Shown piece by piece: positions 34,991 through 63,152 of a stretch of DNA of 64,000 nt. Under the pieces are notes generated by a model. That model saw only the letters and a program-made list of their open reading frames with translations, was not told the DNA's origin and ran no database searches. Numbering within the stretch: position 1 is the stretch's first letter; the number at the start of each line of letters is the position of its first letter. The position numbers were made by a program, and so were the translations under genes. The stretch is from positions 1 through 64,000 of IMG/VR virus record IMGVR_UViG_3300042465_005589. The stretch is one strand, 5' to 3'.

Positions 34991-35010
34991 TATATTTATA
35001 AATAAAAAAT

Positions 35011-35395: not shown

Positions 35396-35893
35396 ATGAA
35401 AAAAGTAATTAAACTATCTGAATCAAAACTTACTGAATTAGTTAAACGAATCATGTCTGAACAAGATAATGAAAGATATATGTTTTTCAGTAATTTAGAA
35501 CAAATTCATAGACAAACAGGTTTGTTATTGGAATTAAATAAAAATACCGTTGAAGGTGTTTTAGATGGGGGTCATGATTGGGCTCAAGACCATTTATCAA
35601 CCGCAAAAGAAAATATTGACCAAGTTTTTGATTTCATGATGAATGAAACTAAAAATGAAGACAATATGAATGTTTTAGAACAGGACTACTCGACTGACGT
35701 TGAAAGACCCACAAGTGATAGAGAACGTCAAGCAAAATCTTTATTTGGTGACAAATATGGTGCATATATACCTAATGATGTTATTAGGTACATAAGAAAA
35801 AATCCTGCACAATTCTTTAAACGACTCTACCAAATGTATGGGGACAAAGCTTATGAATATTTAGATAAATCAAAAAATAAAGGGGAAAATTAA
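35396..35893 (+). CDS. hypothetical protein with putative capsid-targeting leader
   Basis: N-terminus MKKVIKLSESKLTELVKRIMSEQ, near-copy of the leader of 54400..55419. Confidence 0.7.
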   Translation: MKKVIKLSESKLTELVKRIMSEQDNERYMFFSNLEQIHRQTGLLLELNKNTVEGVLDGGHDWAQDHLSTAKENIDQVFDFMMNETKNEDNMNVLEQDYSTDVERPTSDRERQAKSLFGDKYGAYIPNDVIRYIRKNPAQFFKRLYQMYGDKAYEYLDKSKNKGEN

Positions 35894-35910
35894 ATTTCTC
35901 CTTTTTTTTT
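35880..35910 (+). terminator. intrinsic terminator
   Basis: aaggggaaa...tttctcctt stem plus T tract. Confidence 0.65.
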
Positions 35911-35943
35911 ATAAAAATATTTTTTATTCTCAAAAAATATAAT

Positions 35944-35951
35944 TACATTTG
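35944..35951 (+). promoter_or_regulatory. Bacteroidota sigma-A -7 element
   Basis: TACATTTG (TAnnTTTG) upstream of 35976. Confidence 0.6.
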
Positions 35952-35975
35952 TACTATAAATAAATCAAGTACATA

Positions 35976-36419
35976 ATGAAAAAAATATTTAAATTTTTTA
36001 AAAGATTGGTGATAAGACGTATTGTTAAATCAAGAAGTCAATTTGATTATCAAGACTCGGGACTATTAGGCGATGTACATATCTGCAAATCAATATGTCG
36101 TAAGTTAATAACTAGTGAGGGGTCTAAATTTTTAATTGCCCCCCTTTCATCACAAAGATATATTAAACATTCCGAATTAGGAATATTTATTATTCTTGAT
36201 GATAAAAAAATTAGTGTAATCAATCACGAGTACTACTACAGTAATATTTTAATGTCTAACAGAGATTGGGAAAAATTAACTAAAATGTACGATACTAAAG
36301 TAGAACGTATTAGACAAGAACTTAAAAATGAAATGAAGTCTCAAATCAAATATTCTTTAAAAAGTATTTTAGATAGAGTGGATAGTTCCAAAAAAATAAA
36401 AACCCCTACTGTAGAGTAA
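35976..36419 (+). CDS. hypothetical protein (host-type promoter)
   Basis: 147-aa basic ORF. Confidence 0.65.
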   Translation: MKKIFKFFKRLVIRRIVKSRSQFDYQDSGLLGDVHICKSICRKLITSEGSKFLIAPLSSQRYIKHSELGIFIILDDKKISVINHEYYYSNILMSNRDWEKLTKMYDTKVERIRQELKNEMKSQIKYSLKSILDRVDSSKKIKTPTVE

Positions 36420-36431
36420 GGGTTTCTTTAT

Positions 36432-37421
36432 TTAAAACATATCTTCTAATTTATCTAAATGTTTTCTAACAATATCCAAATCACTTATATCAGTATAGGT
36501 CATTCCTTGTTTTTTTAACATTTTAACATGGTTATGTAATTGTGTCATCATTTGTCTAATCATTCCGGACATTGTTGGGTAATTTTCAATCATCTTATCT
36601 AAAAAATAAACTTGTTCAGGTAAGTTTAGAACATTACCAATTTTTTTAACCCATTCTTTTCCATATTTATCAGCATCCATTTCCATATCCCAATAAATTT
36701 TGTAAAACTCCTCAAAGTCTTCAATATCTCCCATGTAAGAATCTTTCAAATTAAATTCCGACATTTGTTGTTCATGTTTCAATTCGTGAAATAAAACATA
36801 TACAAATGATGCAAAATTTGAGAATGACTCAGGTGAACATATAATAATCGCCTTACTTGTTCGAACTCCTTGAAATCCTGTGTTACAGGCATTCAATACT
36901 TTTATTGTATACCCCCTATCTTGAACATAATCTTTTATTTTACTAACGATTAAATCAAACGCTTTATATTTGTCTTCAGGAATGTCTTTTCTAAATTTAT
37001 CAATAACCCTTTCATAATTTGAGGTAGTTTTTAGACCGTTTGGGATGATATCTTCTAAAATCGTATCTTTGGTTATCTCAAACCATTCCGTTACAATAGG
37101 GACTATCTTTTTCTTCCCACCGGGTGTTTGATTTAACACACCGCCTTCTTCATCATTGTCTTCAGGATGTTTTTTCACATATTTAGAAATTTTTCTAGAC
37201 TCTTTTTCTATTTTTGCAATTTTATTCTTTGGTGTACTCATTTTACCATCATAACTATCAAACGCTAATTCTGCACTATCATACTTTGATGTTGGAACAA
37301 TAAAGGGTTGTAATTGCTCTTTATTGAAAAGCCTAACACCAGGACTCATCGGAACTCTAAATGAACCCGAACCACCAGTACCTGTAGCTTCTTTAATTTG
37401 TTTTTTGTTATTTTTATCCAT
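36432..37421 (-). CDS. putative zinc metallopeptidase-like (HExxH) protein
   Basis: YVLFHELKHEQQ...EMDAD; start moved to MDKNN (37421) because the late motif occupies 37428-37434. Confidence 0.6.
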   Translation of the reverse strand: MDKNNKKQIKEATGTGGSGSFRVPMSPGVRLFNKEQLQPFIVPTSKYDSAELAFDSYDGKMSTPKNKIAKIEKESRKISKYVKKHPEDNDEEGGVLNQTPGGKKKIVPIVTEWFEITKDTILEDIIPNGLKTTSNYERVIDKFRKDIPEDKYKAFDLIVSKIKDYVQDRGYTIKVLNACNTGFQGVRTSKAIIICSPESFSNFASFVYVLFHELKHEQQMSEFNLKDSYMGDIEDFEEFYKIYWDMEMDADKYGKEWVKKIGNVLNLPEQVYFLDKMIENYPTMSGMIRQMMTQLHNHVKMLKKQGMTYTDISDLDIVRKHLDKLEDMF

Positions 37422-37449
37422 ATACTTATAAATATACAAAATTTTAATT

Positions 37450-37683
37450 ATGGAACAACAACAACAAGAACTATTCGGAAAATTATTTAATACTATCCCA
37501 TTATATAATGAAGACCATTTAGACGTACTACTATCAACAATGGATAAAGAACAATCAATCTATATTCTAACTCAAGCCGTTAGTTTTGCATTTCACTCAG
37601 GCGTGTTTTCATTGGGGGAATCAGAAATTATTTCAAAATCAATAAGAACATTAAATAAAATTGAAAAAAATGTTGTGGGATAA
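37450..37683 (+). CDS. hypothetical protein
   Basis: 77-aa ORF. Confidence 0.6.
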   Translation: MEQQQQELFGKLFNTIPLYNEDHLDVLLSTMDKEQSIYILTQAVSFAFHSGVFSLGESEIISKSIRTLNKIEKNVVG

Positions 37684-37695
37684 ATAATTTATATT

Positions 37696-37703
37696 TACAT
37701 TTG
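37696..37703 (+). promoter_or_regulatory. Bacteroidota sigma-A -7 element
   Basis: TACATTTG upstream of 37724. Confidence 0.6.
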
Positions 37704-37723
37704 TAAAATAAAATACAAACACT

Positions 37724-37996
37724 ATGAAAAAAATATTCTTATCACTTTTACTTATTGTAAGTCTATCCTCATTCTCTCAAGATAACCCAAAACCAAAAAA
37801 CATTGATAAAGGTATCAATGTTTTGTTAGATTCGTTATCCAATGTTTATCGTGTTAAAGTAGGTGCGGTCATTGTTAATGATTACCCAAACTTAAGAACA
37901 ACAACAATCGTTTATGTTAAAAATGGTGAATTAGTTAAAAAAATTATTAAAACTGAAAAAAATCCACCAAAACGAGATATATTAAGTAAAAATTAA
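37724..37996 (+). CDS. small secreted protein (Sec/SPase I)
   Basis: MKKIFLSLLLIVSLSSFS|Q signal peptide with Gln+1. Confidence 0.75.
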   Translation: MKKIFLSLLLIVSLSSFSQDNPKPKNIDKGINVLLDSLSNVYRVKVGAVIVNDYPNLRTTTIVYVKNGELVKKIIKTEKNPPKRDILSKN

Positions 37997-39150
37997 ATTG
38001 TTTTATTACACAGTGCGGTAACACTATATCCGGTTTTAATTGTATCAGTACCAATTGGTGAATAAACTCTAACAATTGATTCTCCTGATGAACTATTGAA
38101 ATTTATTTTAATAGGTGCCTCTCCTATTGTATAAATAACAAATTCTTTAACACCTTTATTACAAAGTTTTTGAAGGTCTTTTAAAGCATATTCTACTTCA
38201 ATTCCACCTCTTTTAAATGTTTTTGATTTGGATGGGTCAACTAAAAGTTGTTCCAATAACTCTTGATAATTATTTGCTGTTATTTTTACAAGTTTATCAC
38301 CACTAACTGACACATTATTTCTTGAATTTATAAGAGTTAATTGATAAACATATAATGGGACCCATTTAAAATCAACATATTTATGTGGTCTAGTCGTCAC
38401 ATAACCAGTGTCTTGAATCACCTCTTCCCCCTTATTAAGAACAACTAATCTATCGGGAATGGTTCCGGTATCAAAAGTTACAACACCATTACCATATAAT
38501 TTTTCATTAGTTAATACATAATTAAGACTTGCATCTCCTTGACCCGCCTCAATTTTTACACCAACCCAATTACAAATATCTTTGGAATCTTTATCTTTAA
38601 CTTCCCCCGTTCCTTTAATATCGAAATTAACAAACTGTTCTTGTTTGTATAATTTAATTTTTTCAGGGTTTTTATTATCACCTTTAGTCTTATCATACGG
38701 AGTTTTACCTAATGTAACTTGATTAACATCTGTTGGAACTTGGATAGTTAAAACACCATTCTTGATTAAATCAGGAAATATCTCCTGAAAATATTTTTTA
38801 ACCGAATTTGCTCTTGCCAATGCCAAACTTCCCTTTGTCTCATATCCTTTAGGATTCGTCACATTTGATTCTCCAGATGTTATATTAACTATAAATGTCT
38901 TACCACCATTGTCTTTAATAAATTTTTCAATCTGAGGTTTTAATGCGATAATATCGTTTTTAACGGTTGGGGAATCAATCTGACCAAACCCAAATTTATC
39001 TCCAATACTTTGTATTGGGAATTCTGTGTTAATCAACGATTGTTTTGTAGAAACTTGTTCCAGGTTTAAATATTGTCGTTTTGTCGCGCCTTCGTGAAGA
39101 TTCATTATTCTATTTCTTTCCTCACTAGATATCTCAAATAAATTATTCAT
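37993..39150 (-). CDS. late protein with degenerate OmpA-C-like domain
   Basis: start MNNLFEISSEERNRIMNLHE; FGFGQ...IVNITSGESNVTN...SLALARANSVKKYF; late motif 39165-39171. Confidence 0.6.
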   Translation of the reverse strand: MNNLFEISSEERNRIMNLHEGATKRQYLNLEQVSTKQSLINTEFPIQSIGDKFGFGQIDSPTVKNDIIALKPQIEKFIKDNGGKTFIVNITSGESNVTNPKGYETKGSLALARANSVKKYFQEIFPDLIKNGVLTIQVPTDVNQVTLGKTPYDKTKGDNKNPEKIKLYKQEQFVNFDIKGTGEVKDKDSKDICNWVGVKIEAGQGDASLNYVLTNEKLYGNGVVTFDTGTIPDRLVVLNKGEEVIQDTGYVTTRPHKYVDFKWVPLYVYQLTLINSRNNVSVSGDKLVKITANNYQELLEQLLVDPSKSKTFKRGGIEVEYALKDLQKLCNKGVKEFVIYTIGEAPIKINFNSSSGESIVRVYSPIGTDTIKTGYSVTALCNKTI

Positions 39151-39205
39151 ATTTTTCTTTTTATATAAATACATTATTATTTATTTAAACTTAATATTTG
39201 TGCAT

Positions 39206-39233
39206 AAAAAAAAGGGACATATAGTCCCTTTTT
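39206..39233 (-). terminator. intrinsic terminator after major capsid gene
   Basis: aaaaaaaagggac-atata-gtccctttttt. Confidence 0.85.
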
Positions 39234-39255
39234 ATTAAATATTTTAAGATTTTGA

Positions 39256-41112
39256 TTATCTCAATTCTCTTAAATCGAATGTTCTAACACCATCTACAGT
39301 AATTCTTCCGTAAAATCTGTTGTTCACCATTTTTTTCGCGTAACGAGTCATTATACCTTTAATCGGTGTAAAGTTGAATGGGTTGTACATTGTTGGTGTT
39401 AATTGTAATGGTACATACGGTGCGTAGATGTATCCTGTGTCTAACAATGATGTTCCTTTGTGTCCAATTAACACTTGGTTAGCTGGGAAGTAAGGGTCAC
39501 GGTAAACTTGGTAACGTCCTGCTAATGTTCCAACTCTTTCAATACCCATGTTATATTGGTCTTGTTCAGGAGAAGCATTAGATACGTGGAAGTACTCTAA
39601 ATCATCAAAGATAGCAGAAACCTCAGAAGATACAACAATCCAGTTTGCTCCACCTCTTAAAGTAGATTTGTGGATTTGTGCAGACAATTGGTTAATTGCT
39701 GTAATTAATGTTTGGTTCCAATCTTTTTGAGTGTAAGAAGTTACTTGAGAAATTCTTCTCCAACCATTGTAATCCCATCTCAAGTTCCATGCAGCACCTT
39801 TACGTAAATCTCTTAAGATTTCACGGTCAATTTCTGCCGCAACTTGCTCAGATAATAAAGCTGTTAATTCAGCTTCAGCATCGATGTTGTGGAAAGCTGC
39901 AACGTCTTGAGCTAACTCAGGAGACCATTGTGCTCTTAATTTTCTTTCTGTAACTGATACAGTAACTGAATCTAAATCGAAAGAAACCTCACCGATTTTA
40001 TCTTCAAATTCTAATTCTTCATAACGTCTGAAAACAGCTTTAAATGAAGTTGTTGCTAATGCTTCAGAAATAGTTGTACCTGTGTAACCATCTAACGATG
40101 AAGAATCACAATCAGCACATACTGGACAAGATAAATCAACTTCTAACCAAATACAACCATCAACGTCACATACATTTTTGAATGAACCACCGTTACCAGT
40201 AGATGCAAATGTTGTTTGAGTTGTGTTACCATATTTCACAATACCTCTACCATAGATTTGAGTTACAACTCTAAATAATAAAGCTCCTGTAGATACAGCA
40301 CATGGTGAACTAGCGTCAACTGTTAAACCAGCTCCTGTATAGATAATTAAATCAGATAAGAATGATTCAGTATCCATTTCGTTACCATCAGGTCCGATTA
40401 ATTTTCCTGCACCTGTGTCAGCAAAACCACACATTTTAATGATAACTTTTCTTGTGTTACCTGAAGCAATTACTGCTGCTCCATCAGTTGTTCCTGAAAT
40501 AACTGCATCAACTAAAACTCCACCTGTCCATTTTTGGATAGTTGTTGTTGCTGTGATAGCTGACCAACGACCTTTAGAATAATCAAATAATCCTGGTGGG
40601 TCTAAACTTGGTTCGTTACCTTCATAGAATAAATCATAAAGATTTTTTTCATATACTGGGTTGTTTGAGCCTGAACCTGCTGTGTAACCTTCACTTGGAG
40701 AACCTGGATAATTTCCTGGAGACCCGATTGGTGCGTAGTGCTCACCTGAATACTGACCGTCAATACCGTCTTTGTATCCTTGAATTTTTGGTACAAAATA
40801 GAATAATTTACCGATTGGTAAGTTCATTGCTTGTACAGAAACGATATCATTCGCTAATAATTTAGAGAATACTCTTCTTACGATAGGAAATACAACAGTT
40901 TCAAATGAACCTGAAGACCCGTCAGAAGTTGCTTCGTTTATTAAGAAAGACGCTTGGTTCTCATATAATTGAGCTACGTTTTCTCTTAAGTGACCTTTAA
41001 GACCTTCAAGAAATCCTAATTTGTCCCATTTGTTGATTGTGTCTTCTTTAATAACTTTAAGGTGTTTTAACCCGATGTTACCAACTAGACCTGATTCTAA
41101 TAATGCTCCCAT
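39256..41112 (-). CDS. major capsid protein (T4 gp23-like)
   Basis: VSVQAMNLPIGKLFY, RKLRAQWSPELAQD..AFHNIDAEAEL, EIDREI, YAPYVPL, FTPIKGIMTRY. Confidence 0.96.
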   Translation of the reverse strand: MGALLESGLVGNIGLKHLKVIKEDTINKWDKLGFLEGLKGHLRENVAQLYENQASFLINEATSDGSSGSFETVVFPIVRRVFSKLLANDIVSVQAMNLPIGKLFYFVPKIQGYKDGIDGQYSGEHYAPIGSPGNYPGSPSEGYTAGSGSNNPVYEKNLYDLFYEGNEPSLDPPGLFDYSKGRWSAITATTTIQKWTGGVLVDAVISGTTDGAAVIASGNTRKVIIKMCGFADTGAGKLIGPDGNEMDTESFLSDLIIYTGAGLTVDASSPCAVSTGALLFRVVTQIYGRGIVKYGNTTQTTFASTGNGGSFKNVCDVDGCIWLEVDLSCPVCADCDSSSLDGYTGTTISEALATTSFKAVFRRYEELEFEDKIGEVSFDLDSVTVSVTERKLRAQWSPELAQDVAAFHNIDAEAELTALLSEQVAAEIDREILRDLRKGAAWNLRWDYNGWRRISQVTSYTQKDWNQTLITAINQLSAQIHKSTLRGGANWIVVSSEVSAIFDDLEYFHVSNASPEQDQYNMGIERVGTLAGRYQVYRDPYFPANQVLIGHKGTSLLDTGYIYAPYVPLQLTPTMYNPFNFTPIKGIMTRYAKKMVNNRFYGRITVDGVRTFDLRELR

Positions 41113-41144
41113 TTTTTTTGGTTTTTATTAATTTTTATTTATTT

Positions 41145-42695
41145 TTATTTTAATTTTGACATTAAGTCTTTCATTCTTAAGAACTGTGGATTCTCATATG
41201 TTTTAGATTCAATTAGATTAATTGCTGAACCTGTTGAAGGTGCTTTAGCAATTGTTCTTTCTAATGACTCATTCATAGGTTGAGAAGAAGTCCCTGTAAG
41301 TTCATCCTTAATGACTTTGTATAAGTTTTTAGATTCTTTAATGTTTTCAACACCGTCAAATCTTCTTAAGATATTTATTTTTTCTTGTTTTGATGTTGAA
41401 TGTTCTGTAAACAAACGAGTAGCGTAAGCTAAGTTTGAATTAAACACTGCAACCTCATTCAATTTATTTCTAAATACGTTAAGAGCTTTTCTGTATTCTT
41501 CATTTTTTTCTCTAAGAACTGTTAACTCAGTTGTATTAGTATTCTCTTTAATTGCGGTATTAAAAGATGAGTGTGCTCTTGGTTTTGGCAAACCACCTTT
41601 TCTGAAATTACTTCCATTACCTAATGTGCGAGAAGCCTCTTTTGTTTCAGCTTTTTTAGTTGTGTTAGCAACTTGCTCTTTTGTTTCTGTTTTTTTAACA
41701 GTTTTCATTTTACCTTCAAGATTTTCACCATCTTTGTAATCAAATTTTGCTTTTCCTGTACCCATAGTTACATTAGCAGATTTTTTTACAGTTTTGAAAC
41801 CACCATTTTGATTAGGTTTAGTATCATATTTAAATTTACTAGGATTCCCTAATCCGGTTCCTTTAGGTTTTACAGTCATTTTAGATTCTACTACTGTATC
41901 ATCATCCATGTCCATATCATCTTGTTCATCTAACTCTGTGTCGTCTTCGTCATCAAAAGAAATTTCATAAACGATTTCTTCATCGTCCATATCTTCTTCT
42001 TCGTCAAATTCTGATTCAAAATCTTTGAAGTGTCCATCAACATCTCCAATTTTATGACCATTACGTCTTTTAAAATCGTGTTTGTTTCCTCCAAACGCTT
42101 CACCCATTTCTGAATCTTCGTCGTCATTATCAAATACTCTAGATATGATATCTTCGATACCTTCAGAATCATCGTCTTCATCTTCGTCTTCAAATTCGAA
42201 TTCGTCTTCGTCTTCGTCTTCGTCGTTAAATTGTTCAAACATTTCTTCATCTTCGCTCTCACCAACAATCATGTATTCTTTATTGTTCTCGTTGTCTTTT
42301 AAACTGATGTTACCAGAATCATCTTTAGTAACTACAATATTATCCTCAGGTCCCATTAATTGAAATACACGTAAGATTTCTTCATCGTCATCTACGTCAG
42401 TAAGGTCTATGGTTTCTTCGTCATCATCCATATCTACATTATCAGTATCCATGTCGTCTTCCATATCTACATCAACATCCATGTCATCCATGTCTGTATC
42501 CATATCCATGTCATCCATGTCAACTTCAGTGTCAATCTCTTCTTCTTCTTGTTCTGTAAGAGATTCTTTTACTAGTTCTTTGATTTCTTGCGACATTGTC
42601 GAAGCAAGTATTCCTTTTGCATTTTCAGCTACCGCTTCTTCCAAATTTTTCATTTGGATGATAGCTTCTTCAACTAAAGATTTTTCTTTTGCCAT
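41145..42695 (-). CDS. prohead core/scaffolding protein
   Basis: extremely acidic, many LxE sites, directly upstream of the capsid gene; C-terminal FLRMKDLM. Confidence 0.8.
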   Translation of the reverse strand: MAKEKSLVEEAIIQMKNLEEAVAENAKGILASTMSQEIKELVKESLTEQEEEEIDTEVDMDDMDMDTDMDDMDVDVDMEDDMDTDNVDMDDDEETIDLTDVDDDEEILRVFQLMGPEDNIVVTKDDSGNISLKDNENNKEYMIVGESEDEEMFEQFNDEDEDEDEFEFEDEDEDDDSEGIEDIISRVFDNDDEDSEMGEAFGGNKHDFKRRNGHKIGDVDGHFKDFESEFDEEEDMDDEEIVYEISFDDEDDTELDEQDDMDMDDDTVVESKMTVKPKGTGLGNPSKFKYDTKPNQNGGFKTVKKSANVTMGTGKAKFDYKDGENLEGKMKTVKKTETKEQVANTTKKAETKEASRTLGNGSNFRKGGLPKPRAHSSFNTAIKENTNTTELTVLREKNEEYRKALNVFRNKLNEVAVFNSNLAYATRLFTEHSTSKQEKINILRRFDGVENIKESKNLYKVIKDELTGTSSQPMNESLERTIAKAPSTGSAINLIESKTYENPQFLRMKDLMSKLK

Positions 42696-42812
42696 TTGTG
42701 TTTAAGTTATTTTAATATATAAATATCTCCCATTATTAAAAAATCATTATTTTTAATAATTTGGTGTTGAGTTTTTTTATAACTATAAATATTACCAAAA
42801 AAATAAAAGCAT

Positions 42813-42841
42813 AAAAAAAGGAGACATTTCTGTCTCCTTTA
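42813..42841 (-). terminator. intrinsic terminator
   Basis: aaaaaaaggagaca-tttc-tgtctccttt. Confidence 0.8.
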
Positions 42842-42862
42842 TTAATTATTGAATATAAATTC

Positions 42863-43072
42863 TTATTCTATCACTTCATCAATTTTGCTTTCAACAATTG
42901 CTGTGATTCTCCATTCCATTGTATAATGCTCAAAAACTTTCGTAACTTTCGCTTCTACATCAGTTGGGTTATAACCACTAACTAATTTTTCTTCTCTTAA
43001 TTTTTTAATCTTTCCTGATGCCTCATCAACTGAGTCTAAGGTAATTTTTGCAATGAAATACTTCTCGTCCAT
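42863..43072 (-). CDS. small protein resembling Bacteroidota DUF4494
   Basis: YFIAKI...GKIKK..E..LV....TDVEAKV...I..I.ESKI pattern (recalled, not searched). Confidence 0.45.
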   Translation of the reverse strand: MDEKYFIAKITLDSVDEASGKIKKLREEKLVSGYNPTDVEAKVTKVFEHYTMEWRITAIVESKIDEVIE

Positions 43073-43089
43073 AATTTTTTTTATTTAGT

Positions 43090-43815
43090 TTAATGACCTA
43101 AATAATCGTTTAATTTTTTCATTAAGTCAAGTGATTTATTACCTGAATTACCAACATGTCTTTCAACACTCATTCTTTTCTCTTCATCTAAGTTTTCATC
43201 ATACAAACTTTTATCCTCTTTATTTAAAAATAGGTATGCTCCCGGTGTTGAAGGTGAAGACACTAAGTCAAAACAAATTAATTCAAAATCATCTTGTACT
43301 TCGTTTTGGTCACCAATTTTTTTAAGTGACCCAACACCCCTTGATGATATACCTAAAGTAACTCCTTGTCTTAAGTAATTTGCAGCTAAATCTCCTTTAG
43401 TTGAACAGATACCTCTTTCATGGTAACCCGGTGATGTCAATAATTTAATCTTTCCCATTAAGACGTTACCTTCCCACCATACTTCAGTGATTGCATGAGA
43501 AACTCTATCTAAATCAATTAGTGATGATTCCGGGTGATTTAACTCTGATAGAGCAGTACCCTTTTTAATCATTTTTTTATAATTCTCAGATTCTCTTTTT
43601 AATATACGTTCAGGGTATAATCTACCATTTCTATTTGGGGTGTCATATTTTTGTAATACGGCATAAAATTCAAATGGTTTTGAGTGGTCCAACATCTCGC
43701 TAGATTCTCTAATTAAAGTTTCGTTACGATTATCCTTTGGGTTAATATAACCCGCATCGTATTCAACTAATATACCTTTTCCTGATTCATTCGGTTGTAA
43801 TATTTTTAAACTCAT
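43090..43815 (-). CDS. prohead protease (T4 gp21-like)
   Basis: NRNGRLYP, ELNHP, VSH, GISSRGVGS, FDLVSSPSTPGA. Confidence 0.93.
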   Translation of the reverse strand: MSLKILQPNESGKGILVEYDAGYINPKDNRNETLIRESSEMLDHSKPFEFYAVLQKYDTPNRNGRLYPERILKRESENYKKMIKKGTALSELNHPESSLIDLDRVSHAITEVWWEGNVLMGKIKLLTSPGYHERGICSTKGDLAANYLRQGVTLGISSRGVGSLKKIGDQNEVQDDFELICFDLVSSPSTPGAYLFLNKEDKSLYDENLDEEKRMSVERHVGNSGNKSLDLMKKLNDYLGH

Positions 43816-43838
43816 TTTAAATGTTTTAATAATAAATA

Positions 43839-44309
43839 TTAAACATTTTCGGTTTGTGACGGATATTCAACGGATTTGATTTTTTTAGTTAGATAAAAGT
43901 TAAAATAATTATTTTTATAAAAGTTATCATTAAAGATTTGATTTGTTATTTTAATTAATGAATCTTTAATTTGTTTTGATTTAAAATCGAAGTTTTCCTC
44001 AATAATAAAAAAGTTAATTTCAATATTCATAAATGATTTTTTCCCCAAATTTAAACCGCTTGACCTTAAATCTAAATCAACGATAAATTTTGTATCAAAA
44101 ATTTTATTATTTAAAGAGTCATAAACTGAGTGTTTTACTCCCCTACTTAGGTTTAAAACTGTTCGATTCCAATTATCACAATCATAGAATGGTTCGACCC
44201 ATGTTTGTATATTTAAGTAAAGTGATTTTAAGTTGACAGAATCAACTGTTCCATAAACAACTTTTGCAGTTTTAAAACCGTTTAGTTGAGAGGTTTTCCC
44301 CTTTTTCAT
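43839..44309 (-). CDS. hypothetical protein
   Basis: 156-aa ORF. Confidence 0.65.
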   Translation of the reverse strand: MKKGKTSQLNGFKTAKVVYGTVDSVNLKSLYLNIQTWVEPFYDCDNWNRTVLNLSRGVKHSVYDSLNNKIFDTKFIVDLDLRSSGLNLGKKSFMNIEINFFIIEENFDFKSKQIKDSLIKITNQIFNDNFYKNNYFNFYLTKKIKSVEYPSQTENV

Positions 44310-44401
44310 TAATTTTCATATTTTTCCTTTTATTTTTAAAAAAGATAGGTAAAAATAGGTGTTAGGTCAAATTTTTTGTTAATTTGGAATATATGTATAA
44401 T

Positions 44402-44596
44402 ATGTTAATAATTAAATTAGATAAAAATACATCAATAGAGAAAGCGTTAAAACTCTATAAAAGTAAAGTTATTAAGACACGTCAAAGCTCTGAACTTAAT
44501 AAAAGAAAAGAATTTATTAAACCTTCCGTAAAAAAAAGAAACGTGTTAGCAAAAGCTAAACACGTTCAATTAAAATATTATTCGGATAATAATTAA
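44402..44596 (+). CDS. rpsU: 30S ribosomal protein bS21 (phage-encoded)
   Basis: MLIIK...IEKALKLYKSKV.KT....EL..RKEF.KPSVKKR; 64 aa from ATG 44402. Confidence 0.9.
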   Translation: MLIIKLDKNTSIEKALKLYKSKVIKTRQSSELNKRKEFIKPSVKKRNVLAKAKHVQLKYYSDNN

Positions 44597-45312
44597 AGAT
44601 TTTCTTTTAAACTTTTAAGTTTAAAATAAGTCAACTTGTCGTATTTCTCAGATATCACTTTTGTAAGTGTTTCATCAATCCTACCTTTCACTGAATTATC
44701 TTCAGATGACTCTTTCATTGCATTTAATTTATCAACCACACTTTCTTTAAGAGTGTTAAATTTAATTGATAATTCTTTATCATCTTCAGACAACAATTTA
44801 ACAATTTCTTTTTTATCAGACTCACTTAAACCATCAATATAATTTTTAATGGTTTTGTTTGCAACACTAACCATAGTTGATAATGGAAGTTCAATACCTT
44901 TAGTTTGTATAACCGGTATTTTTTTTAAATTTTCTAAAATTAAATTTTTACTTTTAAGTCTTGATTCAATAGTTAAAACATCTGTTGAAAATAGGTTGTC
45001 AATGTTTTCATATGAATTATTTGATTTCGTATTTTTAACCCATGTATTTAATTTTTTTAAATCTGCCGGTAAAATTTTATTAACAGCATTTTCATATAGA
45101 GTAATACATTCATGGATGTATTCTCTTGAATATGAATCATTCAAACCTTTTCTAGTGTTTAATTCATCATACATGTAGAAAATTTTACTAACATTTTTAT
45201 TTTCTAATACAAGTTTTTTAAATGTTTTTAATTCGTCTTTAAATGTATCGTTTTTATACGATTCAAGTAATACGTTTTCTATCTTCGATTTTAATATTCC
45301 AAACTTTGTCAT
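44593..45312 (-). CDS. hypothetical head-module protein
   Basis: start MTKFG (45312), late motif 45326-45332, many LxE sites. Confidence 0.7.
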   Translation of the reverse strand: MTKFGILKSKIENVLLESYKNDTFKDELKTFKKLVLENKNVSKIFYMYDELNTRKGLNDSYSREYIHECITLYENAVNKILPADLKKLNTWVKNTKSNNSYENIDNLFSTDVLTIESRLKSKNLILENLKKIPVIQTKGIELPLSTMVSVANKTIKNYIDGLSESDKKEIVKLLSEDDKELSIKFNTLKESVVDKLNAMKESSEDNSVKGRIDETLTKVISEKYDKLTYFKLKSLKENL

Positions 45313-45332
45313 TTTCTTTTTAATTATAAATA

Positions 45333-47189
45333 TCAATCATTTAAGATTTTATCCAATTCTTTCTCGATATCACCTAAAGAATTTCTTGCTCGAGATAAAT
45401 CAATATACGAATCATCTTCAGTTAAACTACGGCTTTCCAATAAAATGTTCATATTCTCCCGTGTTTTTGATTCAGGTGTTAATTCTGCTTCACCACCAGC
45501 TTCAGGCGCTCCACCCGGTTCAGGTGCTCCACCCGGTTCAGGTGCTCCACCTAATTCAGACTCAAGACCACCTAAGGCACCTCCTCCACCAGCAGGTGGT
45601 GGTGCAGGAACAGCTCCACCAACAGCGGTTGTTCCGGATTTACTTGCGTATAATTTATCAATAGTATCAAATACTCCTGTATGAGTGATAATTGTTGCGG
45701 TATTAGTTAACTCAGCACCAACGGCTTTTTCAATACGTTGTTGTTGTAAATCTAATTTAATTTCTTCATCAGAGAATCCTAACACATGTTTTTTAGCCCA
45801 TGTTACCGATACCGGAGCAATACCTTCGATAGCAGCCACTGCGTCTTTATACAATAAAATTTTCTCTTTCCAAATATCGATTTTTAATAAATCGGCTTGT
45901 GAAGATGGGTTAGTTAATGCCAATGTAAAGTTTGATAATTCATCCTCAAACCCTAATAAAAATAAATGAATAATTGCGATTTTGTTTAATTCTGCAATCA
46001 TCGATTTTTGTATTCTATTAATTGTTCTTGCGAAACGAATATCCATTAATGATAGATTTTTACCATCACCAGTAACTTCTTCAAAACCTAAGAATGCTTT
46101 AGGTACACGAAGAGCGGTTAACAATTTCTTTTGGATGTATTCAATATCCGCAATCTCAGCTAAGTTTTGTGCTCCCGGTAATGTATCAATTGGGTTTGGT
46201 GCCGCAGGGTCACGAACAGGAATAAAGTAATCTTGGTCAACAGCCATTTGATTGAATCTCATATCAACATTACCTGTTTGAGAATCCACAACTTGACTTC
46301 TTTTAAATTTATTAGCAACACGTTGTACATACGGTTCAACATCTTTATCATCCATGTTACCAACATAAACTTTAAAAACACGTCTTTCAGGTGCTCTTGA
46401 TGTTCTATAAATTAACATCGCATCTTCAGACAATAATAATTGTTTCCATATACGTCTTGCTTTCTCTAACATAGAAGTACCATAAGGAAGTTTTCTATCA
46501 TCACCTAGTAATCTAAAGTGAGCTATCTCCCATGAATTAAACTCCATGTCTTTAACTTTCCATTTGAAACGTAAACCCCTATTTTCAAGTGGTTCATCAA
46601 CATTTGCCGCCTTCGCAGCCATACCACGTTCCAAACGTTCAATTTCAATGTTTGGTAATTGCATACATCCAACAATACCTTTTTCAGCATCCAATTTTAG
46701 ATACACAAAATTATCCCCATATTTACAAGTGTTTCTTGTCCACATAGGTAAGTTAGTATTTAAATCTAAAACATTGTTAAATAAATCCGTTAAGATACTT
46801 TTTATTCTTTTTGATTCAGAATAAATTTGTAACATATAACCATTTTGGTCAACAGTTGTTGATTCCTCACCATAGATATCTAATGCCGCAGAAATTTCAG
46901 GAGTGTACTCCATAGATTCATAATCATAAAATGACGCTAAACGAGTTGGTTCATAATATACCGCTTGGGTATATAAGTTACTCTCAATTTTAGTCCATTG
47001 GTTGGCTAAGTAATAAGTTTGTTGTGCCTGTAATTTTTCTCTCTCGTATTCGGCTTTAGATGTGGTTTTTAATAATTCCTTCTTATCTAACTTATATACG
47101 GGATAATCTTGGTTCAATAACGAGTTCGGTCCAAATGCTTTGGATAATCTTTGCCAAACTGTTAAATCATTATTTTGATTGTTTTCCAT
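45333..47189 (-). CDS. portal protein (T4 gp20-like)
   Basis: YESM...PEISAALDI, EDAMLIYRTSRAPERRVF, DYFIP.R, IDTLPG, ALRVPK. Confidence 0.94.
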   Translation of the reverse strand: MENNQNNDLTVWQRLSKAFGPNSLLNQDYPVYKLDKKELLKTTSKAEYEREKLQAQQTYYLANQWTKIESNLYTQAVYYEPTRLASFYDYESMEYTPEISAALDIYGEESTTVDQNGYMLQIYSESKRIKSILTDLFNNVLDLNTNLPMWTRNTCKYGDNFVYLKLDAEKGIVGCMQLPNIEIERLERGMAAKAANVDEPLENRGLRFKWKVKDMEFNSWEIAHFRLLGDDRKLPYGTSMLEKARRIWKQLLLSEDAMLIYRTSRAPERRVFKVYVGNMDDKDVEPYVQRVANKFKRSQVVDSQTGNVDMRFNQMAVDQDYFIPVRDPAAPNPIDTLPGAQNLAEIADIEYIQKKLLTALRVPKAFLGFEEVTGDGKNLSLMDIRFARTINRIQKSMIAELNKIAIIHLFLLGFEDELSNFTLALTNPSSQADLLKIDIWKEKILLYKDAVAAIEGIAPVSVTWAKKHVLGFSDEEIKLDLQQQRIEKAVGAELTNTATIITHTGVFDTIDKLYASKSGTTAVGGAVPAPPPAGGGGALGGLESELGGAPEPGGAPEPGGAPEAGGEAELTPESKTRENMNILLESRSLTEDDSYIDLSRARNSLGDIEKELDKILND

Positions 47190-47246
47190 ATGAAAAATTT
47201 AAATATTTTTTTATTTTAATAAATAGTTGAGATTAATCAATTATTA

Positions 47247-47930: not shown

Positions 47931-47950
47931 TTATGTTTATTTGATAAATA

Positions 47951-49720
47951 TTATCTATTCCCAAATAACCAGCCGTATTTTAGATAATCGTCTTTACTTA
48001 TATTACCATTACTGAATTGACCAACTCTTTCATTGGTGTTAGGAATTACAGGGTTAAACGATATGGCTTCTCTAACATTATCATTATTACTAATCGACCA
48101 AGAATCAATCATCGCTTTGGTATGTTCAGTCACTTTTGTTAATTTACTGAATGAAGATTCTGCAACATATGTCGCCATAGCAATCGACATAATTAAATCG
48201 TCGTGATGACCCTTTTGATGGTCAGGTCGACCATTCATATAGATAAATGTATTCATTTCGTTATATAGTCTTGAACTATATATCCTGAACCCGTGTCTCA
48301 TAACTTCTTCATAAGACGCTATAATTTGTACCCTCTTATTGTTAAAGTTAATACCAGGTATTTTTTCAGCAGCTTTTGGGTCGTACTTCCATTTGTTCGC
48401 GGAATCAACACCATCAATGTATAAATCTTTGAAATTCATTTCCTGTAACTTTCTCGCTGTCGATACTCCCATTCCACCTGTAATATCAATAACGACAAAA
48501 CAAGAATATAATGTTGCCCATTTGTGACAAATTTCCGCCATCGTATCGGGGGGTAATTTTCCAACATATTCAGCAACTTGTTCCATAGTGTCAAAATCAA
48601 CAATTTGAAAAGAACTAAAATCTTCTGAATCTCCACGAGAAACGTCAACACCCATGATATATTTATGTCCAACAATAGGGTCTTTCCAAATCCAAAGAGC
48701 GTTACCCATTCTTTTACTTATTGGTTCTAAAATCATGTTTTCACGAATCTTATTCATCATAATAGAATCAAATACGTTATCACCCGAACCTAAAAAGTTA
48801 CATTCTAACTCCTGAGATACTTTACGTTTATCGTATTTTAATTTTTTAACCATCGCCTCAAACCAAGAAGAACAAGGTTTAAAACCGGCATCCATAATAA
48901 TTCTTAATTCTTTGTAATTTCTATCCTCATATGGTATTTTAGCCCAATCAATAATGTCGTCCGGTTTGTAATCTTCTTTATTTAATAAATAATGAATAAC
49001 ATCCTCAGTTTTAACTAAATATAAATCTTTAGTATAACGTGGGTCACGATACCAAAACATTTCTGTAATTTTGAAATCATTCATATTACGTAATGCTTGG
49101 TCATATATCTCATAATAAATCGCGTCATAACCATTAGGTGTGGAGACAACAATTACTTTACCACCCGTAGATAGAGAAGCCATACAGGCAGCCCAAAAGT
49201 CACTATCAGCCTCAATAAAGGCTGCCTCATCAAATATAAGTATGGTTGGTGTAAATCCACGTAAGGCATCCTTAGATGTCGCAACGGCTTTAACCTCACA
49301 CCCATTTGTTAATTTATAATGTTTTTGAGAATTTTTTGTTTTGTCAAAGTCAACACCTGTCCAAGAAGGCCATTGACCAACAAACGCTTTTATTTTATTA
49401 GCCATCTCTAATGAGGTGTCTAATTTATTGGCGATAATTAGAATTTTTTCAGGGGTTTCTTTTCTTGCGAATACAAGTTTTCGTGACATCCAAGCCGCAG
49501 TAACTGTTGATACTCCGGCTTGTCTATACTTCAATGCAATGTTTTCATTGTATTCTTCGTAATCTTGGAGTAAGGATAATTGGTCAGGAAAAAGTTCCAA
49601 TGGAACATATTTTTTAACTGTATTATCGTATGTTTCTAAATACGTTTTGAGTGCGTACTCAACATCTCTACTACATTTTACGTATTCTATTAATACTTGT
49701 TCTTTAGTTAAATTTGACAT
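47951..49720 (-). CDS. terminase large subunit
   Basis: KYRQAGVST, LIFDEAAF, STPNG, GVDVSRG, HDDL. Confidence 0.93.
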   Translation of the reverse strand: MSNLTKEQVLIEYVKCSRDVEYALKTYLETYDNTVKKYVPLELFPDQLSLLQDYEEYNENIALKYRQAGVSTVTAAWMSRKLVFARKETPEKILIIANKLDTSLEMANKIKAFVGQWPSWTGVDFDKTKNSQKHYKLTNGCEVKAVATSKDALRGFTPTILIFDEAAFIEADSDFWAACMASLSTGGKVIVVSTPNGYDAIYYEIYDQALRNMNDFKITEMFWYRDPRYTKDLYLVKTEDVIHYLLNKEDYKPDDIIDWAKIPYEDRNYKELRIIMDAGFKPCSSWFEAMVKKLKYDKRKVSQELECNFLGSGDNVFDSIMMNKIRENMILEPISKRMGNALWIWKDPIVGHKYIMGVDVSRGDSEDFSSFQIVDFDTMEQVAEYVGKLPPDTMAEICHKWATLYSCFVVIDITGGMGVSTARKLQEMNFKDLYIDGVDSANKWKYDPKAAEKIPGINFNNKRVQIIASYEEVMRHGFRIYSSRLYNEMNTFIYMNGRPDHQKGHHDDLIMSIAMATYVAESSFSKLTKVTEHTKAMIDSWSISNNDNVREAISFNPVIPNTNERVGQFSNGNISKDDYLKYGWLFGNR

Positions 49721-49735
49721 AAGTCAACTTGGTTA

Positions 49736-51103: not shown

Positions 51104-51105
51104 AA

Positions 51106-52098: not shown

Positions 52099-52498
52099 AT
52101 ACAACTTTTTTTTCAAATTCTAAAACGATATCTCGTTCATATAATTTATTTTTTACTGATTCTTCTGTTTCTCCAAACGAGAAAACTAGTCTAGTTTGTC
52201 TATCAAAATCAACATCATCACTTTCATTTTCATACCCTAAGGCTATTATACCATCCATAGAATCAATCATTGAAAAATAATCAGAGTTTTGAATTACTGA
52301 CATGGTTACCATATCATTCTTCAAAACTCCTACTTTTTTTATGTGTTCTAAATCAGGTGGGAGAGGATATCTATTGGACGGTTTTGAGTCCCAGTTTTCC
52401 CCCCAAATGTTTTCCGAACTATCTGAGAAAATAAATTCATATATGTTATCTCCTTTATAGTTTGGACCTAATTCATTAACATATATTAAATAACTCAT
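52088..52498 (-). CDS. hypothetical protein
   Basis: 136-aa coupled ORF. Confidence 0.65.
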   Translation of the reverse strand: MSYLIYVNELGPNYKGDNIYEFIFSDSSENIWGENWDSKPSNRYPLPPDLEHIKKVGVLKNDMVTMSVIQNSDYFSMIDSMDGIIALGYENESDDVDFDRQTRLVFSFGETEESVKNKLYERDIVLEFEKKVVYEH

Positions 52499-53808
52499 AG
52501 TACTTCACCTTTAGTGTTTACTCTAAGTTGTTTATTATTCATTTCAAATACCAAATTATTTTTATTTGTTTTACCAACTAATTTTGCGTTTGGATATTTT
52601 ATTACTAATTTAGTAGAAGCGACTTCTTGAGAAATACTTTCAGAAATTTGTTTGATTTTAGAAATTTTATTTTTTCTTTCTTCTTTAATCAAATTAGTTT
52701 TTTGTGTTTTATTTTCTAATAATTGTTTTTCTTTTTGGTCAATTTTAAAATAACCTCTTAATACTTCATCAACTTTTGATTCTGTAAACATACCTTCAAA
52801 CATATCTTCTAAATGATTTGCGTGGTCGTCTTTCATTGTGTGAGGATTTAATCTTCTATGTCTTGGGTGAGAAGGTAATTCATCTTCTTCAAAATCAAGT
52901 TCAAAGTCATTATCCATAAACCCTTCAGCCATTTCAGGTTCTACATCCATATCTGCTTGGATATCTTCAACTTCAGTATCATCGGTAAAATCTTCACCAT
53001 CCATATCATCTTCTTGACCAAATTCATTAGCTTCATCTTCTTCAAATTTATTCATGATTTCCTCTTTATCTTCTTCATCTAAAGATTCTAAATCTAACGC
53101 TGATAAGATTGAGTTTATAACGTATTTAACATCTTTAGATGTCATTGGTTCGTCTTCTTGAGCATCTTCAAAGGCTCTTAATTTTTGAGCCAATTTACCT
53201 GTTAGTTTTTGGATTACTTTTAAAGTAACAATTTCATCATCTTCAGGTTCCATTTCATCGTCACCTAAATCAATTTCTTCTTCGTCATCAATATCAAATT
53301 CATCTTCAGGTGCCGGAGCTGGAGCAGGTGCCGGAGCAGGTGCCGGAGCTGGAGCAGGTGCCGGAGCAGGAGCAGGTGCCGGAGCCGGTGCAGATTGTTC
53401 ATCAGTTTCCCCACCTTTCATTTTTAAGATATATTTTGTTGCGTCGTTTTCGTAAAATAAATTAACATTGGTTTCTTGACCTTCGTTAACATTAACTTCT
53501 TTTGCGATTAAATTAAGTCTTTTAAAAGCTTGAGAATAAGAAGAATAATATTTTCTATTTTTCATTGGCTCTAAATAATCTACTTCACCAGCAGATTCTG
53601 TTAAACTTCTTTTAATAACATAACCATTTTTTTCTTTGATAATTTGATAATTTCTACCATCAGCTAATGTTTTAGTATAATCAACTGAAGTACTCTCATT
53701 TATCGGTGTAGGTTTGTTTTCATTATATTTTGCGATTTCCATGATACGTTGAATCTTCTCCATACCTTGTAATTTTTCGCTACCAATCGGTCTTAAATTA
53801 TTTCCCAT
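52495..53808 (-). CDS. acidic protein with (Ala-Pro)n linker, probable core/internal head protein
   Basis: IQRIMEIAKYNE leader, (AP)n tract of about 14 units, D/E tracts, late motif 53839-53845. Confidence 0.65.
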   Translation of the reverse strand: MGNNLRPIGSEKLQGMEKIQRIMEIAKYNENKPTPINESTSVDYTKTLADGRNYQIIKEKNGYVIKRSLTESAGEVDYLEPMKNRKYYSSYSQAFKRLNLIAKEVNVNEGQETNVNLFYENDATKYILKMKGGETDEQSAPAPAPAPAPAPAPAPAPAPAPAPAPAPEDEFDIDDEEEIDLGDDEMEPEDDEIVTLKVIQKLTGKLAQKLRAFEDAQEDEPMTSKDVKYVINSILSALDLESLDEEDKEEIMNKFEEDEANEFGQEDDMDGEDFTDDTEVEDIQADMDVEPEMAEGFMDNDFELDFEEDELPSHPRHRRLNPHTMKDDHANHLEDMFEGMFTESKVDEVLRGYFKIDQKEKQLLENKTQKTNLIKEERKNKISKIKQISESISQEVASTKLVIKYPNAKLVGKTNKNNLVFEMNNKQLRVNTKGEVL

Positions 53809-53949
53809 TTGTTAATTTTTTATAAAATTATTTTATTTATAAATATATTCAGAATTAAGAATGTTAAGATTCTGGTATATTTTTATGGTTTAGTAAAAAC
53901 TTTTTTAAATTATTTATCTATAAATAGTTGGGAATTAAAAAAAAAATGT

Positions 53950-53957
53950 TATTTTTG
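53950..53957 (+). promoter_or_regulatory. Bacteroidota sigma-A -7 element
   Basis: TATTTTTG upstream of 53984. Confidence 0.5.
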
Positions 53958-53983
53958 TATCAAACATTAAAACATTTACTGAT

Positions 53984-54367
53984 ATGAAAAAACTAATCAC
54001 CATCATCCTTTTTATTTTTATCTCAAATTTATCCTTCTCCCAAATAAAAAGGGCGGGTAGTTTTTATGAATTAACTGATTTATGGAAAAAAGATTCTGTA
54101 TCGGTTAAACAATTAATTACCAAGTTTGATTTAAATATTACCAAATTAGATACGGTACAATTCTTTAAACAATTTAACTTAAATAAAGATTTACACACTA
54201 ATTACTCATACGAATGTTATGTGTATAAATTAGATAAGAAGACTAACACTATTTCAATGAAAGAATATTTTCGTCAAAGTCTAAAACCAAAATTAAACAA
54301 ATATGTTATGATTTTCTGTTTTGATAATGATAATGGTGAAAAAATAATTAACATCAAAATATTTTAA
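53984..54367 (+). CDS. small secreted protein (Sec/SPase I)
   Basis: MKKLITIILFIFISNLSFS|Q signal peptide with Gln+1. Confidence 0.75.
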   Translation: MKKLITIILFIFISNLSFSQIKRAGSFYELTDLWKKDSVSVKQLITKFDLNITKLDTVQFFKQFNLNKDLHTNYSYECYVYKLDKKTNTISMKEYFRQSLKPKLNKYVMIFCFDNDNGEKIINIKIF

Positions 54368-54401
54368 AAAAAAAGGGGTCTCGTTAAAGACCCTTTTTTT
54401 T
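54366..54401. terminator. bidirectional intrinsic terminator
   Basis: A tract-ggggtct...agaccc-T tract between convergent genes. Confidence 0.8.
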
Positions 54402-55419
54402 ATTTCATTATTGTTGGAAGTTTAATTATTAATCTTCGATTAGGTGCGGTTTCATTTTGATTTGTTACCTCCGGGAATTTTTTACCGGGTGCGAATTGGT
54501 CTGTTTCACCAATACCTTTAGGAATAAAATTTAACTTAATTCCTGGTAAACTAGATTTAAGAGTTGTTGCAATTTTCTGAGCTCTTTTTTTAGATAAATC
54601 CATATCATAATCTTTTCTTTTTTGACCTGATGCAACTTTACCTTCAGGGTTTCCATCTATAGATGATGAACAAATTACCTCAACATCTCCTTGAACATTA
54701 GAATAATTTGATTTAATAGATTGTACAAAATCATTAAATTCTTTTTGAGCCTCATTTGTTAGTTCAACACTATCAAAATTAAAAGGGCTTGTTATGTTTA
54801 ATTCAAATGGTTTGTCTACCGGTACTTCTTCCGGTTTATTTGAATTAAATGATGTATTGTATTGACCAGGATAGAAATTTATAAGATATGCTTTTCCTCG
54901 ACTTCTATAATATGTTTTAGCTGAGATTATACCATCTTTTGATTCTTGATATCTAGAGTTATTTTTAAAATAATCCCCCGGAAATTCTTGAATACTCGCA
55001 CCATAAACTATTGGAACACCAATAGGTGATTTTTTAGAAGGGGCATCTTGAGGTACTACAGCTATAAACGCAAAATCAAGATTTTTAGTTTGAATAGGTG
55101 CCGCATTAGAATTTACAATTCCTTGCCAATTTTCTGTGGTAAGTTCAATATTAGTTCTAAAATTTTCATCTACAACTTCTTGAGTTTTAACATTATATTT
55201 AAAATCGTATAAATTACCATTTAATGGTTGAGTCGGTTTAACTTCCCCATCTTCATCTACAGATACTTCATATAATTCCCCATCGATTATTTTAATATTA
55301 ATTCCAGTCGCTCCAATACTATAATAAGAGTTATCATCAGAACTATTTTGTTCACTCATAACTCTTTTAACAATTTTATAAAATTCAGACTCAGTTAGTC
55401 TAATAATTTTTTTTCCCAT
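54400..55419 (-). CDS. OmpA-C-like domain protein with putative capsid-targeting leader
   Basis: leader MGKKIIRLTESEFYKIVKRVMSEQ; FNFDSVEL...DLSKKRAQ...KGIGET...NRRLII. Confidence 0.8.
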   Translation of the reverse strand: MGKKIIRLTESEFYKIVKRVMSEQNSSDDNSYYSIGATGINIKIIDGELYEVSVDEDGEVKPTQPLNGNLYDFKYNVKTQEVVDENFRTNIELTTENWQGIVNSNAAPIQTKNLDFAFIAVVPQDAPSKKSPIGVPIVYGASIQEFPGDYFKNNSRYQESKDGIISAKTYYRSRGKAYLINFYPGQYNTSFNSNKPEEVPVDKPFELNITSPFNFDSVELTNEAQKEFNDFVQSIKSNYSNVQGDVEVICSSSIDGNPEGKVASGQKRKDYDMDLSKKRAQKIATTLKSSLPGIKLNFIPKGIGETDQFAPGKKFPEVTNQNETAPNRRLIIKLPTIMK

Positions 55420-56745: not shown

Positions 56746-56770
56746 GTTTATAAATATAATTCAAATTTGT

Positions 56771-62999: not shown

Positions 63000-63152
63000 A
63001 TGAACCCAAGAAAAAAAGAAGAAGATAAAAAAGTAAAATTTGGAATCTGTGTTGACCCGGTAATATACCAAAAAATGGAAGATGAGATGATTAACAAATC
63101 TCGCCTGATTGAAACACTATTGAAAGAACATTATGGAAAAAAAAGTTTGTAG
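63000..63152 (+). CDS. small ribbon-helix-helix-like protein (50 aa, missing from ORF track)
   Basis: MNPRKKEEDKKVKFGICVDPVIYQKMEDEMINKSRLIETLLKEHYGKKSL; late motif 62979-62985; overlaps HNH start. Confidence 0.6.
   Translation: MNPRKKEEDKKVKFGICVDPVIYQKMEDEMINKSRLIETLLKEHYGKKSL

Follow-up and report, generated by a model that had tools for sequence, protein, structure and literature searches.

The window analysed here, the first 64 kb (64,000 nucleotides) of the 318,164-bp virus record IMGVR_UViG_3300042465_005589 (31% GC), carries a T4-like phage head module flanked by two genes whose unrelated products begin with near-copies of one short leader. Leader copy 1 (MKKVIKLSESKLTELVKRIMSEQ, 23 amino acids, 35396..35464, + strand) has two motifs, L-S-E↓S (residues 7-10) and M-S-E↓Q (residues 20-23), in which the arrow marks the bond that would be cut, and heads an open reading frame (ORF) of 165 amino acids (35396..35893, +), the cargo of which is a conserved helical 'YMFFSNLEQ...HDWAQDH' domain. 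Leader copy 2 (MGKKIIRLTESEFYKIVKRVMSEQ, 24 amino acids, 55348..55419, - strand) has L-T-E↓S and M-S-E↓Q and heads an ORF of 339 amino acids with a putatively OmpA-like, peptidoglycan-binding C-terminal part (54400..55419, -). The third copy in this genome, MKKIIKLTESDLKKIVLKLLDEQ, lies outside the window at the head of a 152-amino-acid ORF (genome 143933-144391, -).

The preliminary description of this DNA had claimed that the proteins starting at 35396 and 55419 share nothing but the leader, and BLASTP bears this out, with the leader alone aligning (E=2e-6). A leader hidden Markov model scored against all 1235 ORFs of the genome recovered these two copies and added the third, all at E<1e-11, with the next match, at ~1e-3, being internal; a six-frame search of the genome yielded the same three copies only at E<1e-11. 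The three copies differ at synonymous codon positions and the leader is thus conserved as protein, under selection on the peptide; a shared RNA or DNA operator or a recent duplication was rejected on this ground.

Orthologues of the 165-residue protein have a conserved Phi-x-E motif (Phi, hydrophobic) at each domain border. Most of them (P0005, P0049, P0120 and others) continue at the C-terminus into a Cys-rich part (KLCARG...PSAYANG...) that follows a conserved [MIV]xE↓G[RK]KK; by eye this part recalls the DUF5872 domain of ORF 140618-141457, and it is missing from the window copy. The match of the 339-residue protein to the Pfam OmpA family (PF00691, E=2.3e-5) has 25.1 bits, slightly below the cut-off of 27.2, and its neighbours in the atlas are OmpA clusters, to be taken as no more than a lead; P0161, a homologue with two leaders, is encoded on a 311-kb contig. 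The OmpA-like protein had been listed as cargo together with WYL and HExxH proteins, and it alone of these carries the leader, 'WYL' being a mere tripeptide in 63133-63753 and 'HExxH' the HELKH of 36432-37439.

A leader shared by unrelated proteins

The leader represents a large undescribed family, a conserved module found on unrelated cargos that number in the hundreds to thousands. In IMG/VR a pattern scan gave at least 203 confirmed stretches with the leader, from which 80 loci were examined. These encode 125 leader proteins, mostly of 80-240 residues and often in tandem arrays, which fall by BLASTP into 62 cargo families, in keeping with the earlier proposal that the tag is portable. Among 1.84 billion representative proteins, a profile built from 57 leaders matched 9,469 clusters at E<=1e-3, of which 1,002 reached E<=1e-10. 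Pfam holds no model for the leader and no paper containing 'LTESDL' was found among those searched. Among 185,579 prokaryote species genomes the leader was matched in only five contigs of metagenome-assembled genomes (MAGs). When 50,697 records of cultured or deposited phages were searched with the leader proteins by tblastn, there was no usable match, and no cultured relative with the leader came to light. By CheckV completeness the IMG/VR leader contigs are fragments of ~300-kb phages, and the near-complete leader contigs examined all represent phages of about 280-410 kb encoding a T4-type S77 protease, with 3-17 canonical-leader carriers per genome. A second group, comprising phages of 280-412 kb, has a 26-residue variant of the leader and 7-17 carriers per genome.

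The cargo is very diverse and, where recognisable, appears from its domains to be cell-wall directed. In 64 representative carriers the recognisable domains were PG_binding_1, LysM, OmpA, Tae4 amidase, YkuD/Tlde1 and alpha/beta hydrolase, and none of the cargo recognised in these carriers was a metabolic or replication enzyme. A carrier of another leader type also has PG_binding_1.

The consensus of the first group is MKK[VI]I[RK]LTESDLxRIVKRVIxE↓x. In 98 distinct leaders of this group L7 is present in 97/98, E9 in 98/98 and I/L/V/M at position 20 in 98/98; position 22 is Glu in 95/95 aligned leaders, and residue 23, following this boundary Glu, is Gln in 57%. In the second group (112 leaders; consensus MKKxIRLTESDLHRIVKESVxRxLxE↓x) P3 is L/I/M in 108/108 and P1 is Glu in 102/102, with P1' variable. 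Likeness between carriers ends at the boundary Glu in both variants, and with an invariant L-T-E↓S inside and Phi-x-E↓ at its end the leader holds two hydrophobic-x-Glu motifs. As read from the sequence, the pattern of residues 9-22 is basic and amphipathic: L12, I15, V16, V19 and I20 share one face and K/R lie opposite.

The leader is also found away from the N-terminus, with 52 of the 150 best database matches carrying internal leaders (56 copies, some near the C-terminus), usually without the MKK part. Fourteen of these 56 are preceded within 0-3 residues by Phi-x-E against roughly 4 expected at the proteome-wide rate, an excess just upstream of the internal leaders that may be regarded as suggestive, the cases not being independent. 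Some proteins (P0121-P0161 and others) consist of two leader-cargo units per chain, the internal leaders being without the initial Met.

Two other identities were considered and rejected. A ribbon-helix-helix fold, brought to mind by the strand-helix look of MKKxIxLxE, was dismissed as no family of this fold occurs among the Pfam matches of the 64 carriers and conservation ends after 22 residues, not ~45. A Sec/Tat signal peptide was dismissed since the leader, as read from its sequence, is charged throughout and has no hydrophobic core of ~10 or more residues.

The head module, its cleavage-type sites and gene context

The head genes are T4-like both in content and in order. The portal protein (gp20-type, 45333..47189, -; Pfam Portal_T4 E=7.5e-77) is followed at the gp67/gp68 position by a prohead-core-like protein of 247 amino acids (44593..45336, -), in the orthologues of which several Phi-x-E↓S sites are kept, and by a 156-residue protein. 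Next are the prohead serine protease (T4 gp21-type, 43090..43815, -), a 69-residue protein, a very acidic scaffold-like protein of 516 amino acids at the gp22 position (41145..42695, -) and the major capsid protein (gp23-type, 39256..41112, -; Pfam Gp23 E=2.6e-74, with PDB matches to T4 gp23). The large terminase is encoded at 47951-49720. The closest deposited phages, an uncultured 484-kb phage, Microcystis phage Mel-JY01 and Flavobacterium phage immuto, are distant, with 40-44% capsid identity.

The assignment of 43090..43815 as the protease, already made in the preliminary description, is upheld by matches to Peptidase_S77 (PF03420, E=1.2e-23; 84.1 bits against a curated cut-off of 27) and phrog_207 (E=1e-42). 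In an alignment of 22 homologues H94, H107, S157 and S158 are invariant; the homologues from the large protein search were of little use as an alignment because all are at least 89% identical. This protein is the presumed processing enzyme for the leader. Self-processing has been proposed for T4 gp21, and the protease and its orthologues have a conserved G-I-L-[VI]-E near the N-terminus and N-L-E-E-E near the C-terminus, which may be self-processing sites.

The preliminary description had also pointed to (L/I/M/V)xE sites in the capsid, scaffold and portal proteins, and the cited sites do exist; the bare Phi-x-E tripeptide is, however, common (about 1.9 per 100 residues proteome-wide), and enrichment of Phi-x-E[A/S/G] is confined to prohead-core-like proteins, with capsid and portal not enriched. 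The scaffold ranks first of 425 genes, with nine Phi-x-E[A/S/G] sites against 1.5 expected (p=2e-5), and the ORFs 52495-53808, 44593-45336 and 42863-43072 are in the top nine. Orthologues of the 247-residue protein, 33-63% identical, keep L-x-E↓S-D/E and other Phi-x-E↓S sites, and its L-S-E↓S-D at residues ~170-174 resembles the L-T-E↓S-D of the leader. In the capsid protein all 14 relatives compared keep LINE↓A (residue 60) unchanged, with variation in the residues that come after it, and MAFFT aligns SFLINE↓A with SFLTE↓A of T4 gp23, the mature chain of which is 65 residues shorter in the PDB than the precursor. The predicted capsid propeptide consists of residues 1-60 (40933..41112, -) with the end ...SFLINE↓A. 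The protein encoded at 36432-37439 (-), for which no family match was found, has an N-terminal KKQIKE↓ATGTGGSGSF resembling the capsid INE↓ATSDGSSGSF; it was rejected as a capsid paralogue, the match being limited to 27 residues around the cleavage site (E=0.009).

Across the genome, Phi-x-E-Q is 3.2-fold enriched in residues 9-45 of the proteins of this phage (p=1.4e-8), with the control motifs Phi-x-D-Q, Phi-x-Q-E and Phi-x-E-K not enriched there, and the N-terminal Phi-x-E↓Q matches fall by eye into three leader-like types, about 20 proteins in total. The second type is a short family, MK[IVL]IITE[STN]QY..L.EQ, of ~16 residues ending in Phi-x-E-Q on a dozen or more ORFs at genome 105-181 kb and 287 kb (for example 115146-116306, 140618-141457, 147671-148075 and 161220-161831); its pattern was seen 21 times against 1.6 expected, and one carrier has DUF5872. 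The third, recognised by eye as ~E(E)xxRIxxL/MxGY...[IV]ISEQ, is on 37993-39174 and 52495-53808 and also at genome 103028, 117326, 137965, 189584, 207182 and elsewhere, with PG_binding_1 in the cargo of ORF 137965-139038. Segments at 39150 and 53808 that had been taken for relatives of the leader look by eye like instances of this different motif, and those at 12042 (FKSLILE), 37421, 51103 and the C-terminus of 11277 do not score with the leader profile; most of the proposed related segments are due to chance or belong to other motif families.

In this genome the promoter-like 8-mer ATATTTAT points strongly towards gene starts: 54 of its 137 copies are followed within 45 nt by the start of a gene on the same strand, compared with 13/137 for the reverse complement. 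As ATATTTAT(A) it sits 5-45 nt upstream of 54 genes, often with almost no 5' untranslated region, its positions in the window being 33489, 34992, 42719, 43832, 47944, 53839 and 56750. It precedes the protease (43832-43839), scaffold (42719-42726), tail-tube and adaptor-like genes, and may be a late-type promoter; the T4 late promoter TATAAATA, from which it differs, is not enriched in this genome (130 copies against about 123 expected). The copy at 34992..34999 (+) heads a two-gene unit, 35011-35391 followed by leader gene 1, that ends at a terminator-like hairpin at 35879-35904. The copy at 56750..56757 (-) heads the same-strand run 56413 > 56205 > 55425 > leader gene 2, with a hairpin at 55443-55461 just before leader gene 2 and a terminator-like hairpin at 54368-54401. 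Leader gene 3 is directly preceded by the motif, and in other contigs among the IMG/VR loci the motif occurs after terminator hairpins upstream of leader genes.

S77 proteases are encoded in 19 of the 32 contigs of the first group and in 14 of the 15 of the second, and every leader-bearing genome with a completeness of 90% or more (14 in all, five of the first group and nine of the second) has one. In the second group three to five leader genes directly adjoin the protease, scaffold and capsid genes, an arrangement read directly in three genomes and, for the remaining two, deduced from where the matches lie.

Several further features of the record were noted. At window 1-2800 (-) a region of ~50% GC encodes a collagen-like protein with very long Gly-Thr-Ser/Gly-Ser-Ser triplet repeats that runs off the start of the record, and similar repeats at the other end (genome 315-318 kb) make it probable that this gene is where the contig breaks. 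Two small opposite-strand ORFs, 37724-37996 (+) and 53984-54367 (+), are inserted in the head module and look like morons; their N-termini are signal-peptide-like (e.g. MKKLITIILFIFISNLSFSQ), which together with the MAG labels (Bacteroidetes, Chryseobacterium) hints at a host in the Bacteroidota. A two-ring ClpB/ClpC-type AAA+ protein (AAA_2 E=3e-70, ClpB_D2-small) is encoded at 56857-58905 (+), and an ORF at genome 112682-114550 (-) is DnaK/Hsp70-looking by sequence look only.

A candidate capsid-targeting propeptide and its rivals

As the leader stands on thousands of unrelated small proteins and closes with the cutting motif of the head protease that the phage itself encodes, it is probably a tag for loading cargo into the head. 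In its specific form, a portable propeptide that resembles the capsid-targeting sequence (CTS) of T4 and is cut by the S77 protease, this reading is given about an even chance of being correct. The idea of a portable tag, put forward in the preliminary description, survived all of the indirect tests and gained support from them, and may be considered partly supported. On this model the strand-like N-terminal part and the basic amphipathic helix (residues ~9-22) would bind the acidic prohead core, made up of scaffold and gp67/68-like proteins, during head assembly. The T4-type S77 protease would then cut after the invariant Glu at the border between leader and cargo (Phi-x-E↓), and probably also after the invariant internal L-T-E↓S, such that the cargo freed inside the head could leave with the DNA at infection. 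Delivery in the virion would explain how cell-wall cargo behind a charged, non-export leader gains access to the wall.

A number of points weigh against the propeptide. Gln mostly follows the boundary Glu of the first group, as against Ala/Ser at the capsid and scaffold sites, and the conserved Glu residues of the leader could instead serve helix or partner contacts. The leader is both longer and far more conserved than the minimal T4 CTS, and its internal copies indicate that the module is not strictly an N-terminal signal. An AlphaFold2 model of the 165-residue protein was of low confidence (predicted local distance difference test score 46), with only a helix at 9-23 and then a break, and a prediction of the complex of protease and leader returned 'no answer' and was not used as evidence. 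Many leader genes of the first group lie far from the head module, and phages immuto and Mel-JY01, relatives that encode S77, are without the leader. The co-occurrence of S77 and leader is confounded by shared ancestry, the carriers all coming from two jumbo-phage groups that are related to each other.

The main rival holds that the leader is an uncleaved docking helix on a part of the virion other than the core (tail lumen or tip, baseplate, neck or capsid surface), with the Glu residues as partner contacts. Cell-wall cargo fits delivery at the tip of a contractile tail at least as well as delivery from the head, the core ESDLxRIVKRVIxE is kept in internal copies in which MKK has decayed, as would be expected of a binding module, and the late-type promoter motif would suit any virion protein. 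What such a helix leaves unexplained is that in both of the diverged leader variants the likeness breaks off exactly at Phi-x-E, the residue after it being variable, and that the second-group leader genes cluster by protease, scaffold and capsid rather than tail genes; the further Phi-x-E at each domain border of the 165-residue family also speaks against it, and it is considered unlikely. Were the leader uncleaved, it would still rank, in phage sequence data, among the larger short protein modules that have gone undescribed.

Less probable again is an interaction or oligomerisation helix on intracellular proteins that are not packaged, recognised for example by phage chaperones or a host factor. 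The phage encodes Hsp100- and Hsp70-type proteins, with the Hsp100-type gene 1.4 kb from leader gene 2, and many leader genes lie amid small function-unassigned genes far from the head module. Set against this, peptidoglycan-binding and amidase cargo would have no cytoplasmic target, the leader genes share the promoter-like motif with structural genes, and the cargo found includes no metabolic or replication enzyme. That the leader is a basic amphipathic helix taking wall-active proteins to the producer's own membrane or envelope for a virion-independent role in lysis or exclusion seems improbable, for while the pattern of residues 9-22 and cargo that binds or cuts peptidoglycan agree with it, the hydrophobic face is short, three acidic residues of the leader are conserved, holin-dependent endolysins require no tag, most of the 62 cargo families have no recognisable wall-related domain, and the Phi-x-E boundary and the adjacency to the protease gene are left unexplained.

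Should the propeptide reading hold, sequence alone could tell which proteins an entire branch of uncultured jumbo phages injects, where today this needs virion proteomics of cultured phages. It would point to candidate effectors in the thousands, so far unstudied and in many cases active on peptidoglycan, and would supply numerous natural substrates with which the specificity of S77 proteases could be defined. The T4 CTS has already been used to load foreign proteins, and the leader would be a defined, conserved tag for loading them into large phage heads.

A bolder extension of the propeptide, which is possible and held only tentatively, takes the leader as an address label, readable from sequence, for head-packaged injected proteins across two large groups of uncultured jumbo phages, with its carriers forming an effector catalogue and the label also acting as a cleavable polyprotein linker. 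The two further N-terminal types, the short MKxIITE[ST]QY..L.EQ and E..RI..L.GY...ISEQ, would be parallel labels with the same protease site. If so, at least 9,469 protein clusters would list effectors that phages inject, with the cell wall as the target of many and with relatives of the type VI secretion effectors Tae4 and Tlde1 among them, and one polyprotein could yield several cargos through the leader as linker.

Comparison with known phage systems

In T4 a CTS is present on the internal proteins IPI, IPII and IPIII and on Alt, and is removed by the gp21 protease. The leader is like this sequence in being a short N-terminal peptide with a hydrophobic-x-Glu end that is the sole common part of unrelated, fast-evolving small proteins, and the head genes, with portal, core proteins, S77 protease, scaffold and gp23-type capsid, are in T4 order. 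T4 gp21 cleaves after L/I-x-E, and T4 propeptides of 10-20 residues ending in this way are capsid-targeting sequences (PMC9026906, PMC5694885, PMC3012670), the internal proteins of the T-even phages being a diverse set with only the CTS in common (PMC3012670). Unlike the T4 CTS, the leader has 22-26 residues, is far more conserved, across two phage groups, has two invariant Phi-x-E motifs and also occurs as an internal module. The cargo differs as well, that of T4 being anti-restriction and ADP-ribosylating proteins and that of the leader, the function of which is putative, being cell-wall directed where recognisable. The leader is best described as an analogue and not a homologue of the T4 CTS, with no likeness seen by reading and no tool comparison made.

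T4 gp67 and gp68 are small prohead core proteins that are encoded between portal and protease and processed by the protease. In keeping with this arrangement, the second-group leader genes adjoin protease, scaffold and capsid genes (the portal ORF there is not confirmed), and the 247-residue protein of the window, between portal and protease, has conserved Phi-x-E↓S sites. No sequence homology to gp67 or gp68 was established, and the likeness of the leader helix to the N-terminus of gp67 is a visual lead only.

In giant phages, the phiKZ-like ones and SPN3US, the long propeptides of head ejection proteins are cut by the gp21-related proteases gp175 and gp245 after the Glu of a three-residue motif; their presumed role is to direct cargo into the prohead, and one propeptide may contain several sites (PMC9026906, PMC5694885). 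The propeptides of those phages are mostly longer than 100 residues and family-specific and end in S/A-x-E, whereas the phages described here have one short leader on unrelated cargo that ends in I/L/V/M-x-E, together with head genes that are T4-like in sequence.

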